From the sequence record LR756511.1: 64,000 nt of DNA, one strand, 5' to 3'. Below, in pieces: positions 52,572 through 56,218 of the stretch. Every line of letters begins with the position of its first letter. Position 1 is the stretch's first letter. The position numbers and the translations under genes are program-made. The notes beneath the pieces were generated by a model, which was not told the origin of the DNA, did no database searches, and saw only the letters and a program-made list of their open reading frames with translations.

Positions 52572-52607
52572 TGCTTCTCCTATTTTGGTGGAACCCTTGA
52601 ATCATAA

Positions 52608-52678
52608 TGACCCCTGAGGGAATCGAACCCTCGTCAAAGGATTAAAAGTCCATTGCTTTACCACTAAGCTAAGGGGTC
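52608..52678 (-). tRNA. tRNA-Lys (UUU)
   Basis: Cloverleaf GACCCCT..AGCTTAGTGGTAAAGC..GGA-CTTTTAA-TCC..GAGGG-TTCGATT-CCCTC-AGGGGTC-A; CCA not encoded. Confidence 0.9.
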
Positions 52679-52690
52679 AATCGCCTTTAC

Positions 52691-52879
52691 CTAAGCATAC
52701 CACAATTCATTAATTGGCACGACTAAGACACGTTCAGCGGATGATTGGATGCCGCTACCTTGCACCTTGATAGTATCAATTTGGCAAGGGCCAGAATGAA
52801 CTTCTACTTTCATAGGAAGATTACCGAAACCTTCCTTTTCCAGTCCTTCCAATCGCTTACGCATTTCTGAAACGGTCAT
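52691..52879 (-). CDS. Hypothetical protein
   Basis: MTVSEMRKRLE start; ends in TAG before the tRNA. Confidence 0.55.
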   Translation of the reverse strand: MTVSEMRKRLEGLEKEGFGNLPMKVEVHSGPCQIDTIKVQGSGIQSSAERVLVVPINELWYA

Positions 52880-53271
52880 ACAACAACTTTCTGAGGCATC
52901 ACGCCCAACTCATTAGGTATAAACTCTTTGCCCTTAGAAATTCTAACAATCTCGGCATGAGTGGCACGATAGCCATATTCATGTATGATTACCGTGCCCC
53001 AAACCTTAATAGTACCTAAGATTAAACTGGAGCCATTATAATACCGCCTACGCAGTCTATGATCTTTAAAGGCATGTAAGCCAACACGATTCGTCTCTTT
53101 GGGCCTAGCCTGTGCCCTAACAACCTTGCCCAGCGCCCATTTGGTTCTGGCCCTGGTTCTGAACAGTGATTGAAGACCAACTTTCCAAGCTCGATAAGCC
53201 AATAAAGCTTTCTCTCTTGGAATTTCCACAATCCTTTTAACCTTGCCAAGATTACACATTTTATACTCCAA
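52876..53271 (-). CDS. Phage hypothetical protein, tandem paralog 2
   Basis: AYR.W...GL..F...GTI..WGTV..HE.GYRA.HAEI. Confidence 0.7.
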   Translation of the reverse strand: MEYKMCNLGKVKRIVEIPREKALLAYRAWKVGLQSLFRTRARTKWALGKVVRAQARPKETNRVGLHAFKDHRLRRRYYNGSSLILGTIKVWGTVIIHEYGYRATHAEIVRISKGKEFIPNELGVMPQKVVV

Positions 53272-53626
53272 CTGCTTCTAAATTAGGAAGATATTCTTTA
53301 CCTTTTGTAATTTTAACAATCTCGGCATGGGAAGCACGGTAGCCAGATTCATGAAAAACTACCGTGCCCCAAATCTTAATTGTGCCCATCATTGCCGTCT
53401 TCCACAACCCATTCTTTCTAGCGGCAGGCGATGTGAAACAATACAATCCATACTGATTAATGGCTGTGGGTTTGGCGTGTGTCCTAACCACTTTGCCAAG
53501 TCGCCATTTGGTTTTAGCTCTAACGCTACTTGTGGATTGCAACCCAATGTTCCAAGAACGATAAGCTAGAATAGCTTTATCTTGCGGAACTTCCACAACC
53601 TTTTTTACTTTGCCAAGAATACACAT
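53261..53626 (-). CDS. Phage hypothetical protein, tandem paralog 1
   Basis: Same motifs as 52876-53271. Confidence 0.7.
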   Translation of the reverse strand: MCILGKVKKVVEVPQDKAILAYRSWNIGLQSTSSVRAKTKWRLGKVVRTHAKPTAINQYGLYCFTSPAARKNGLWKTAMMGTIKIWGTVVFHESGYRASHAEIVKITKGKEYLPNLEAVGV

Positions 53627-54637: not shown

Positions 54638-55141
54638 TTAATTCTCCTTAATCGCCTTCGTCCAATAGGCGAATGAGTTTTCAGAAACTAAATTTTCCGT
54701 TTCGTGCAGTTCCAGCAAGAAATTATAAAGCCGTTGAGCAAGGTCTTCTCTTCCCAATAGCTTTAATGAAGTCAAGCAACGTGTAATGCGGAGCCAATTA
54801 TGATTAATCTGGTTCCAGCAATAACGCGCTCGATCTTCGAAATTTTCCGCTTTATAGACTTTCTGGCCATCTGTGTTAAGGCCAAGAAAGCGTAGGAAGC
54901 GGTGGAATGAGTACGAAAGGTTAGCCTGCAACGTTTCACTCTGTTTAAACAGACTGATTTCTTCGTCTGTTAGGAGTGGAGCGTCAGGATTAAAGTTGGA
55001 GGGTTCTTTAAGCGGGAACAGCCACTGCACCCACGAATGATCGAATTCCAGCCAGTCGTCATCTTCATCCTGAATCTGGAATAGATATCGTCCGTCGATA
55101 TCAGGGTGATACCCGCTATAGAAGTTACAGATTTCGCTCAT
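54638..55141 (-). CDS. OGFr_N (opioid growth factor receptor) domain protein
   Basis: LE..H.WVQWLFP...S.FNP.AP.L, F.RFL.FLG, NHN.LRITRCL.SL..LG. Confidence 0.88.
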   Translation of the reverse strand: MSEICNFYSGYHPDIDGRYLFQIQDEDDDWLEFDHSWVQWLFPLKEPSNFNPDAPLLTDEEISLFKQSETLQANLSYSFHRFLRFLGLNTDGQKVYKAENFEDRARYCWNQINHNWLRITRCLTSLKLLGREDLAQRLYNFLLELHETENLVSENSFAYWTKAIKEN

Positions 55142-55463
55142 ATTGCTCTAAAAAGTGATTATAAGCGTTTTCAAACGCTTTTGTACTATCGGTCTTGACT
55201 AGTACAGCATCGACTGGCACTTGAAAGTCATCGTTGCCGATGGAGATTTCAATGCAGCTTTTGCTGTTAACTCTAACGATGTGGTTCGTCGCTAGAGAGT
55301 TTTTGAAATACGTTTCTACTTGCGTGTTAATTACATCAAGCATGGACTGTTGCCACATCACGGCAACGCTGCGGTGATGGAGGAGAAGTTTGAAGTATTT
55401 GTTTCTATAGTAATTTGCCGCCCGCGCCGCCAGGATAAATAGAAACGACAATGCGAGGATCAT
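55125..55463 (-). CDS. Hypothetical protein with N-terminal membrane anchor
   Basis: GGGGAG ribosome-binding site; hydrophobic N-terminus. Confidence 0.55.
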   Translation of the reverse strand: MILALSFLFILAARAANYYRNKYFKLLLHHRSVAVMWQQSMLDVINTQVETYFKNSLATNHIVRVNSKSCIEISIGNDDFQVPVDAVLVKTDSTKAFENAYNHFLEQYERNL

Positions 55464-55479
55464 GAAGCTCCCCTTTGTA

Positions 55480-55564
55480 ACTTTGTAGCAACTTCAAACT
55501 AGGCGACTTTGCCACAACTTCACAACTGCGTAGGTAACGCAGCTACTGCGTAAATAACGCAGCT
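55480..55564. repeat. Two pairs of short direct repeats downstream of the suppressor tRNA
   Basis: ACTTTG..CAACTTCA.ACT x2 (55480-55500, 55506-55527); ACTGCGTA..TAACGCAGCT x2 (55525-55544, 55545-55564), each of the latter a hairpin. Confidence 0.7.
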
Positions 55565-55588
55565 TTTCTGGCGTCATTGCCCTGTCAG

Positions 55589-55661
55589 CGCTTGCGGCGG
55601 GAGTCGAACCCGCAACCAATCAGTTTTAGAGACTGTCGCTCTGCCATTGAGCTACGCAAGC
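55589..55661 (-). tRNA. Amber-suppressor tRNA (anticodon CUA), tRNA-Trp-like body
   Basis: GCTTGCG-TA-GCTC-AATGGCA-GAGC-G-ACAGT-CT[CTA]AA-ACTGA-TTGGTT-GCGGG-TTCGACT-CCCGC-CGCAAGC-G. Confidence 0.88.
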
Positions 55662-55669
55662 AAGCGCCT

Positions 55670-55987
55670 TTAAAGCGAATCAATCAACTCTTTGGATGCT
55701 TCCTTGCCGAGAAGGTCCACCAACTTCTTAGCCGTGCGAACCAATTCCGCAACACCACTGAGAGGATTTGCGGGCTTGGGAGCAGGAGCGACAAGCGACG
55801 GGGCGGTAGATGCGGTTCGCTTGGCGGCTTCCTTCCTCATCTCGTTTCGCCTGTTGTGGAAACTCGACTGAGGGAGCGGAATCCTGTAGGTGCGGAAGAA
55901 CTCATTCTTGGCTTGCGCGTAAGTGGTATCCAAACCCTTCTTTTCCAGAAACTCACGAATCTTCGGCGTCAACACCGACTCTGCCAT
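55670..55987 (-). CDS. Small basic protein
   Basis: AGGAG ribosome-binding site; C-terminal AKKLVDLLG.....LID.L helix. Confidence 0.65.
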   Translation of the reverse strand: MAESVLTPKIREFLEKKGLDTTYAQAKNEFFRTYRIPLPQSSFHNRRNEMRKEAAKRTASTAPSLVAPAPKPANPLSGVAELVRTAKKLVDLLGKEASKELIDSL

Positions 55988-55999
55988 GACACACTCTCC

Positions 56000-56218
56000 T
56001 TACTTTAGGCGGTGAACAATCCGCCCCTTTGTTAAGTCATAAGGTGAAATTTCAACTTCAACCTTATCACCAGGAATCACCCGAATAAAATTCTGACGCA
56101 TCTTACCGCAAATGTGCGCCAGAACAGTATGTCCGTTGTCCAATTTTACTCGAAAACTTGTATTCGGCAAGGATTCCAATACTTGCCCTTGAACCGAAAT
56201 TCCATCCGTCTTAGCCAT
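56000..56218 (-). CDS. infA: Translation initiation factor IF-1
   Basis: [46 protein letters not shown]. Confidence 0.95.

Follow-up and report, generated by a model that had tools for sequence, protein, structure and literature searches.

A 73-nt tRNA gene with the anticodon CUA, found in a 64,000-nt stretch of phage DNA (LR756511.1, positions 124001 to 188000; here called the window), is probably a working, phage-encoded amber suppressor of tRNA-Trp ancestry that is maintained by a small clade of ~0.6-Mb phages using the standard genetic code, as judged from its sequence and that of its relatives. The gene, here called tRNA(CUA), is conserved with its anticodon in four diverged genomes and lies close to infA, which encodes translation initiation factor IF-1. 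The phage genome is circular and comprises 595,163 bp; it was curated from vernal-pool mud in California, and its taxonomic profile is 82% unknown (Al-Shayeb et al. 2020, supplementary tables). A first-pass annotation of the window had proposed an amber-suppressor tRNA derived from tRNA-Trp in a non-recoded phage, and the analysis below largely bears this out.

Structure and conservation of tRNA(CUA)

ARAGORN, which the first-pass annotation had named as a check, called two tRNAs in the window, a tRNA-Lys(UUU) and a tRNA with the anticodon cta at 55588 to 55661, both on the minus strand. The strand of the gene had been absent from that annotation. Rfam family RF00005 matched positions 55589 to 55661 on the minus strand over the full model (1 to 71 of 71) with 65 bits (gathering score, 29 bits) and an E value of 7.5e-12 for the 64-kb window, which, in agreement with ARAGORN, places the gene among the class I cloverleaf tRNAs. 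Read on the minus strand, the acceptor strands are GCUUGCG and CGCAAGC (followed by G73), the linker is UA, the D arm is GCUC-AAUGGCA-GAGC followed by a single G, the anticodon arm is ACAGU-CUCUAAA-ACUGA, the variable region is UUGGUU, and the T arm is GCGGG-UUCGACU-CCCGC. The anticodon loop is the canonical 7-nt loop expected of an amber suppressor (C32 U33 C34 U35 A36 A37 A38), and all the nucleotides involved in the tertiary interactions of a decoding tRNA were read in the sequence (U8, A14, G18G19, and TTCGA). The loop CU-CUA-AA, the discriminator G73, and the anticodon-arm sequence GUCUCUAAAAC were thus as originally described. The cloverleaf had been called intact; it does match the full Rfam model, but positions 27 and 43 at the top of the anticodon stem form A·A (or leave a bulged A). 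The CCA end is not encoded, as in the other phage tRNAs whose sequences were read.

Because ARAGORN labels any CUA tRNA as tRNA-Pyl, that identity was considered and ruled out on structure. tRNA-Pyl has a 6-bp anticodon stem, a 3-nt variable loop, a tiny D loop, and one base between the acceptor and D stems, and it lacks G18G19 and T-psi-C, whereas tRNA(CUA) has U8 A9, a 7-nt D loop with GG, TTCGA, an anticodon stem of 4 or 5 bp, and a variable loop of 5 to 6 nt. No other RNA family, such as a theta- or hepatitis delta virus-like ribozyme, was found beside the tRNA: an Rfam search of positions 55100 to 56100 at an E value of ≤10 returned the tRNA and noise.

Pattern scans identified three orthologues in independent assemblies of other samples, all of them with the anticodon CUA: two on IMG/VR contigs of 373 kb (L038/L088) and 390 kb (L087/L117) and one on a 2.1-kb contig of a metagenome collection (L052). 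An IMG/VR pattern with the exact core including the T arm gave no match, and L038 was found when the T arm was relaxed. No orthologue with a CCA anticodon was found in IMG/VR or in the metagenome collection. The recurrence of CUA in three independent assemblies from other samples makes it unlikely that the anticodon is an assembly error. A pattern scan of genome contigs for a cellular counterpart gave eight matches, none of which was a Trp or suppressor tRNA, so that they held no clue to the host; three lay inside tRNA-Leu(CAA) or tRNA-Ser genes, and ARAGORN found no tRNA at the others.

In the alignment of the four sequences, 11 of the 21 stem pairs had changed on both sides (five in the acceptor stem and three each in the anticodon and T stems), and 94% of the alignment cells were paired. 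None of 500 shuffles reached the observed covariation, and slid controls gave 1 to 2. No variation was seen in the D arm, anticodon loop, UUGGUU variable region, or G73. The covariation expected of a maintained tRNA fold is present, in only four sequences and with a D stem that does not vary. Covariation combined with an invariant CUA indicates that tRNA(CUA) is under purifying selection, which appears to have kept the stems, the anticodon, G73, and the unpaired 27:43, and fits neither a recent C35-to-U accident nor a sequencing error.

The 27:43 position is unpaired (A27·A43) in all four orthologues, although three other pairs of the same stem covary, and it is the sole 27:43 mismatch among 62 scored tRNAs of the 595-kb genome. 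Read in this way, the variable loop has 6 nt; in the alternative fold an extra A is bulged and A27 pairs with the next U, leaving the 5-nt UGGUU loop typical of tRNA-Trp. The lack of a standard 27:43 pair together with a normal 7-nt loop corresponds to an "unpinned" 4-bp anticodon stem, although the bulged-A fold with its A27-U pair also fits the sequence; under either fold, the top of the stem is predicted to be disturbed. A 4-bp stem occurs in 8.9% of bacterial tRNATrp(CCA) genes (PMC13092985), so the mismatch may have been inherited from a Trp ancestor and retained because it helps suppression. According to the same source (2026 NAR), E. coli tRNATrp(CUA) gains the ability to read UAA when 27-43 is unpaired, and UAG suppression by a CUA tRNA becomes more efficient with a G27-A43 mismatch. 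By analogy, tRNA(CUA) may read UAA as well, which we offer as a prediction. Among 30 Trp-like CUA tRNAs (29 from IMG/VR and that of the window), 6 have a 27:43 mismatch.

Ancestry, charging, and genetic code

The proposed derivation from tRNA-Trp received moderate support, with database matches, a masked comparison, and G73 in agreement. The best annotated matches among 50,697 phage records (blastn) were the tRNA-Trp(CCA) genes of Caulobacter, Corynebacterium, Mycobacterium, and Gordonia phages (78% to 86% identity). When the anticodon was masked and the acceptor stem set aside, Trp was the nearest sense isotype (maximum 49, mean 42.8 of 55) and Gln scored lower (maximum 44, mean 36.6), in a set of 197 tRNAs that is partly biased because some Trp genes were chosen by similarity. 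The UGGUU variable loop and the T arm also match those of phage Trp tRNAs. G73, present in all four orthologues, agrees with Trp identity but is shared by Gln, Glu, and Asp tRNAs. The Trp anticodon CCA is replaced by CUA, and with C35 changed to U, recognition by tryptophanyl-tRNA synthetase (TrpRS) is expected to be weaker. The gene is likely of Trp lineage by descent and not Trp-decoding.

The first-pass annotation had also argued from an anticodon arm that differs by one base from a tRNA-Trp arm. The arm is as written, but the argument is not specific to Trp: the arm of tRNA(CUA) differs by a single base from that of the phage's tRNA-Gln(CUG) at genome position 259540, GTCTCTGAAAC, and by two from that of the tRNA-Trp in the same genome, GCCTCCAAAAC. 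Identity to the latter tRNA is 67%, so tRNA(CUA) is not a recent copy of it. Because the one-base argument fits tRNA-Gln(CUG) equally well and the phage's own tRNA-Trp is only 67% identical, Trp ancestry is likely but not proven by these comparisons. We give little weight to the converse derivation, a Gln-type (supE-like) suppressor that arose from tRNA-Gln(CUG) through a G36-to-A change. Gln identity in E. coli is set by U1-A72, G2-C71, G3-C70, G10, and G73, and only G10 and G73 of this set are found here; the acceptor stem is G1-C72, C2-G71, U3-A70 (C3-G70 in L052). That tRNA-Gln(CUG) is, beyond its arm, the most identical of the phage's own tRNAs (77%), and known recoded phages read TAG as Gln (bioRxiv 10.1101/2021.08.26.457843). 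However, the database neighbours are Trp(CCA) and not Gln tRNAs, the masked scores favour Trp, and the variable loop and T arm are of the phage Trp type.

No TrpRS or glutaminyl-tRNA synthetase (GlnRS) gene was found in the phage by tblastn with the E. coli enzymes (E > 0.3), nor was any aminoacyl-tRNA synthetase found by a search for the class I HIGH/KMSKS motifs. With no TrpRS or GlnRS of its own, the phage must rely on a host enzyme to charge tRNA(CUA). Trp identity in E. coli depends on G73 and CCA; with the anticodon CUA, tRNATrp becomes a substrate of GlnRS, and the preference of LysRS is for A73 combined with U35 (PMC2965240). The residue inserted, which had been left open at first, is by our best guesses Gln or Trp: Gln would be likeliest if the host possesses a GlnRS able to read U35 and G73, and otherwise Trp, while G73 makes LysRS a less likely charger.

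A close known counterpart is E. coli su7 (supU), a tRNATrp whose CCA is changed to CUA and which shares with tRNA(CUA) the Trp-type body, G73, the anticodon, and the loop CUCUAAA. In its 27-43 laboratory mutants (Schultz and Yarus 1994, as cited in PMC13092985), the top pair of the anticodon stem is unpaired, as in the phage tRNA. In contrast to su7, the phage tRNA is natural, phage encoded, and conserved across genomes, its mismatch is A·A, and it is known here from sequence. The acceptor stems differ as well (A1-U72, G2-C71, G3-C70 in su7), so that su7-type mischarging by GlnRS cannot simply be assumed for the phage tRNA. The Blastocrithidia-like tRNATrp(CCA) with a 4-bp stem (Kachale et al.; PMC13092985) likewise combines the Trp type with an unpaired 27:43 and has been linked to relaxed stop reading. 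Those tRNAs keep CCA and read UGA by wobble, whereas the cognate codon of the phage tRNA is UAG and any extra reading would be of UAA.

The phage is not recoded, and its own genes use TAG as an ordinary stop. Under code 11, a simple codon-score gene caller gave ~1,001 open reading frames (ORFs) with a coding density of 89%; 533 end in TAA, 281 in TGA, and 187 (18.7%) in TAG, and the GC content is 42%. Coding-like in-frame sequence follows the stop in 11.8% of the TAG-ended genes versus 11.3% of the TAA-ended genes, and in the TAG cases the sequence after the stop is simply that of a neighbouring gene in the same frame, which starts within a few codons. At the three least ordinary TAG junctions, comparison of the pieces with Pfam and PHROGs identified no domain split by TAG; one of these junctions joins a complete PglD-like acetyltransferase and a complete DUF6166 protein. 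With TAG translated as sense, none of the uncalled gaps yields a long ORF of positive score, and TAG-ended genes are evenly spread along the genome (chi-square p = 0.30). In the L038 stretch, TAG ends 5 of 25 ORFs. None of the marks of code 15 was found: reading TAG in frame brings no coding gain, TAG is not rare, GC is not low, and the only release-factor gene found is of the release factor 1 (RF1) type. The first-pass view of the phage as non-recoded thus holds, given the code-11 density, the 19% share of TAG among stops, and the absence of split domains and TAG-sense blocks.

The share of TAG stops is 9% among ORFs of at least 300 aa and ~20% among shorter ones. This scarcity may stem from selection against TAG where genes are long or important, or from spurious short ORFs predicted by the simple caller.

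ARAGORN found 63 tRNAs and one tmRNA in the genome, including the phage's own tRNA-Trp(CCA), two tRNA-Gln(CUG), and one tRNA-Gln(UUG). Most of them lie in arrays at ~220 to 291 kb and 427 to 437 kb, and the suppressor and one tRNA-Lys(UUU) stand apart at ~177 to 180 kb. The tmRNA carries the tag peptide ANPEFAMAA (L008:43680-44032, minus strand; ARAGORN), and one of the other calls is a tRNA with the four-base anticodon gaaa and no assigned isotype (L007:42614-42689, minus strand, ~290614 in LR756511.1; ARAGORN). The latter could be a tRNA with an 8-nt loop, a frameshift-suppressor-like tRNA, or a mis-call.

Linkage to infA and the RF1-type gene

The features of the locus are listed in the table. 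In L038, L052, and L087, the tRNA begins 5 to 8 nt after the infA stop codon, and in L038 the ATG of the next ORF follows 3 nt after the tRNA. The 105-aa ORF that separates infA from the tRNA in the window is absent in these three relatives. The window and L038 share a gene order over ~10 kb (ADP-ribosylglycohydrolase, S24-like peptidase, infA, the suppressor, OGFr_N-like protein, and tRNA-Lys(UUU)), and the tRNA-Lys(UUU) of L038 lies 4.3 kb downstream of its suppressor. Because related giant phages keep the same tRNA next to infA, it is probably used. A search with an IF-1 alignment found infA relatives in 21 IMG/VR phage loci, and a search for related loci with the ADP-ribosylglycohydrolase alone found none.

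Features of the tRNA(CUA) locus and the RF1-type gene (window positions unless an accession is given)
Feature	Position	Strand	Basis or remark
tRNA(CUA), amber suppressor type, 73 nt, G73, no encoded CCA	55589..55661	minus	ARAGORN, Rfam, sequence, four-genome covariation
Anticodon CUA (TAG on the plus strand), preceded by C32 U33 and followed by A37 A38	55627..55629	minus	direct reading; invariant in L038, L052, and L087
Anticodon arm; top pair 27:43 (55636 and 55620) is A·A, giving a 4-bp "unpinned" stem, or a bulged A	55620..55636	minus	alignment
infA (IF-1), head of the same-strand gene run with the tRNA	56000..56218	minus	Pfam eIF-1a/IF-1, E = 1.4e-27
105-aa ORF, TAA stop 8 nt upstream of the tRNA 5' end	55670..55987	minus	ORF list; no family match (no Pfam hit)
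Two tandem 17-nt hairpins, CTGCGTTAnnTACGCAG twice, 27 to 63 nt downstream of the tRNA 3' end	55526..55562	minus	fold, motif count
OGFr_N-domain protein, flanking the infA-tRNA segment	54638-55141	minus	E = 5.5e-26; syntenic in L038
ADP-ribosylglycohydrolase, flanking the infA-tRNA segment	57228-58220	minus	E = 1.3e-52; syntenic in L038
tRNA-Lys(UUU), ~3 kb downstream of the suppressor	52607..52679	minus	ARAGORN, Rfam; syntenic
RF1-type gene, outside the window	LR756511.1 413855-414633 (L010:17055-17833)	minus	

The two tandem hairpins downstream of the tRNA fold with 7 to 8 bp each (z = -2.9); their motif is unique to this site within the 595-kb genome, and they are not followed by a T run. 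They are possibly a processing or termination signal. Elsewhere in the window, two adjacent ORFs on the minus strand (52876-53271 and 53261-53626; 131 and 121 aa) are paralogous, both containing LGKVK..VE.P..KA.LAYR.W..GLQS ... IKVWGTV. The L052 contig, beyond its infA-suppressor pair, consists on both sides of simple repeats coding for GL and SW (GLGLGL... and SWSWSW...; positions 41 to 1100 and 1500 to 2060).

The phage release factor lacks domain 1 and is of the RF1 type (NCBIfam RF1, 223 bits, versus RF2, 153 bits; against the PDB, RF1 at an E value of 5e-44 and RF2 at 1e-25), and its tripeptide PPT aligns with PVT. From a Shine-Dalgarno (SD) sequence and ATG, the gene can be reached only via two successive prfB-like +1 frameshifts. 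At the first site, the leader ORF ends with CTT TAA C, 3 nt downstream of an SD-like AGGTG; at the second, 14 codons on, the +1 frame ends with CTT TGA C, and its own +1 frame is that of the release factor. Two relatives with 84% identity (L053 and L054) have CTT TAG C followed by CTT TGA C. A single CTT TGA C is present in L055 (61%; the same identity applies to L056 and L057, whose upstream regions were unread) and in L059 (48%), where AGGAG stands 3 nt upstream. Of two further relatives with 48% identity, L060 has CTT TGA G and L058 has no site and a plain ATG start. Programmed frameshifting is known for prfB but not for prfA, and TAG has never been seen at the prfB site (PMC12421855, a 2025 mBio survey). 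A TAG upstream in the release-factor frame was considered as a target of the suppressor and rejected; relatives enter that frame by a prfB-like +1 frameshift downstream of the TAG, so suppression is not needed for this gene. RF1-type homologues in phages of 634 to 735 kb (L020 to L023; LR756504, LR756501, LR745206, and LR756502) have plain ATG starts and one or two in-frame TGA codons inside conserved domain 2, at a local GC content of 27% to 32%; from these sequences, the phages look TGA-recoded.

Proposed role and competing explanations

We propose that tRNA(CUA) is transcribed within an infA polycistron, that host RNase P and 3' trimming would excise it, and that the CCA-adding enzyme would complete its end. 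Once charged by a host synthetase, it would compete at UAG with RF1, both that of the host and the RF1-type factor of the phage. The result would be partial read-through of UAG in host and phage genes during infection with no change of code; the A27·A43 non-pair would raise decoding efficiency and may also permit C34 to read UAA by wobble, like the 27-43 mutants of E. coli tRNATrp(CUA). Our best guess at the purpose is manipulation of termination in the infected cell, as one part of a translation toolkit that includes IF-1, 63 tRNAs, a tmRNA, and the RF1-type factor. The amber-suppressor assignment of the first-pass annotation agrees with CUA in a canonical 7-nt loop with U33 and A37, conserved in four diverged genomes.

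Several observations weigh against a suppressor in active use. Back-up stops are not enriched after TAG (31% of the TAG-ended genes have one within 5 codons, versus 29% to 30% of the TAA- and TGA-ended genes), and TAG is not depleted (19%). Long, strong read-through of phage genes would be expected to leave both signatures, and neither is seen, so suppression may be weak, brief, or aimed at the host. The covariation is drawn from only four sequences; the charging enzyme is a guess; and the RF1-type factor of the phage should counter UAG read-through. In addition, the tRNA is missing from 17 other phage loci that encode a related infA and were read for more than 1 kb beyond it, and the carrying clade is therefore small.

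A more targeted use, in which the phage would read in-frame TAG codons of one or a few of its genes or give them functional C-terminal extensions by programmed read-through, as a form of partial recoding or an early step towards it (Borges et al.), seems doubtful. At least one standard-code relative of recoded phages carries a suppressor tRNA, and such tRNAs have been proposed as recoding precursors (bioRxiv 10.1101/2021.08.26.457843). The conserved infA linkage suggests timed expression, and 22 TAG-ended ORFs have an in-frame coding-like stretch of at least 30 codons downstream. However, TAA-ended ORFs have an equal share of such extensions, and in nearly all the TAG cases an ATG follows within 0 to 10 codons, whether or not an SD sequence accompanies it. 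The lack of a domain split across TAG in the three least ordinary cases and of any TAG-sense gap ORF, together with undepleted and evenly spread TAG stops and a GC content that is not low, also speaks against targeted use. Quite unlikely, in our estimation, is a non-decoding role as a regulator, as a decoy for tRNA-targeting defences, or as RNase P/Z punctuation between infA and later cistrons. It would account for the lack of visible read-through signatures in the phage's own genes and for the position of the tRNA, which is wedged so tightly between cistrons (5 to 8 nt after a stop and, in L038, 3 nt before the next ATG) that its excision would cut the mRNA. However, neither punctuation nor a decoy would call for CUA, the loop, G73, and 27:43 to stay constant in four genomes while their stems drift freely, and all the tertiary-interaction nucleotides of a decoding tRNA are present. 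Least probable of all is a decaying or accidental tRNA-Trp paralogue in which C35 recently became U, with neutral or mildly harmful effect. Huge phages do carry many tRNAs, some of them odd, as the four-base anticodon tRNA in the same genome illustrates, and the suppressor is separated by ~40 kb from the closest of the other tRNA clusters, the arrays beginning near 220 kb. The occurrence of CUA with compensatory stem changes in four diverged genomes nevertheless largely refutes an accident; the lack of a CCA orthologue in IMG/VR and the metagenome collection and the low identity to the phage's own tRNA-Trp also speak against it.

The suppressor reading can be extended, as a conjecture that we regard as improbable, to a circuit run by the phage. 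In it, the unpinned tRNA(CUA), co-expressed with phage IF-1, would be a natural reader of UAG and UAA that opposes an RF1-type factor made through stop-sensing +1 frameshifts (CUU-UAA/UAG-C and then CUU-UGA-C), and the two would set the efficiency of termination in the host cell while the code stays unchanged.

Suppressor tRNAs as such are already known, occur widely in recoded phages, and are not confined to this lineage. TAG-recoded phages (Lak, crAss-like, and the Garnet, Amethyst, and Topaz clades, code 15; Borges et al., Peters et al.) also encode a CUA tRNA that the host, itself presumed to use the standard code, is presumed to charge. In those phages, TAG is sense inside many, mostly late, genes and seldom serves as a stop, the GC content is low, and RF2 is encoded by some of them. 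In the phage studied here, by contrast, 19% of the ORFs end in TAG, the GC content is 42%, and no gene with an in-frame TAG was found; its release factor is of the RF1 and not the RF2 type. A "Sup" tRNA is annotated in at least 27 of the first 200 supplementary GenBank files for huge phages (Al-Shayeb et al. 2020), and a Trp-like D-arm plus CUCUAAA pattern matched 28 IMG/VR loci, at 27 of which ARAGORN called a tRNA(cta). By a crude local test, code-11 ORF coverage is high in most of these 28 loci, and treating TAG as sense brings them no particular gain. The "Sup" and IMG/VR tRNAs are genes of the same kind as tRNA(CUA); they have been catalogued and discussed only as support for TAG recoding in genomes of low coding density. 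On two IMG/VR contigs (L025 and L042), two different CUA suppressor tRNAs lie a few hundred bases apart. What is new for the lineage described here is selection demonstrated by covariation, the fixed linkage to infA, the conserved 27:43 non-pair, and a clearly standard-code genome with TAG at 19% of its stops.

The usual explanation for phage suppressor tRNAs is that they enable recoded phages to translate TAG. In this phage TAG clearly functions as a stop, and the suppressor nevertheless appears to be under selection and tied to infA, so that the recoding explanation does not apply, and dozens of similar Trp-like CUA tRNAs occur in phage contigs that seem to use the standard code. What a standard-code phage does with a suppressor tRNA thereby becomes a question that can be tested on a short, defined piece of DNA. 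The conserved 27:43 non-pair would be a natural counterpart of the laboratory mutants that boost suppression and relax wobble, and tRNA(CUA) may be a useful, naturally tuned scaffold for genetic-code-expansion work.

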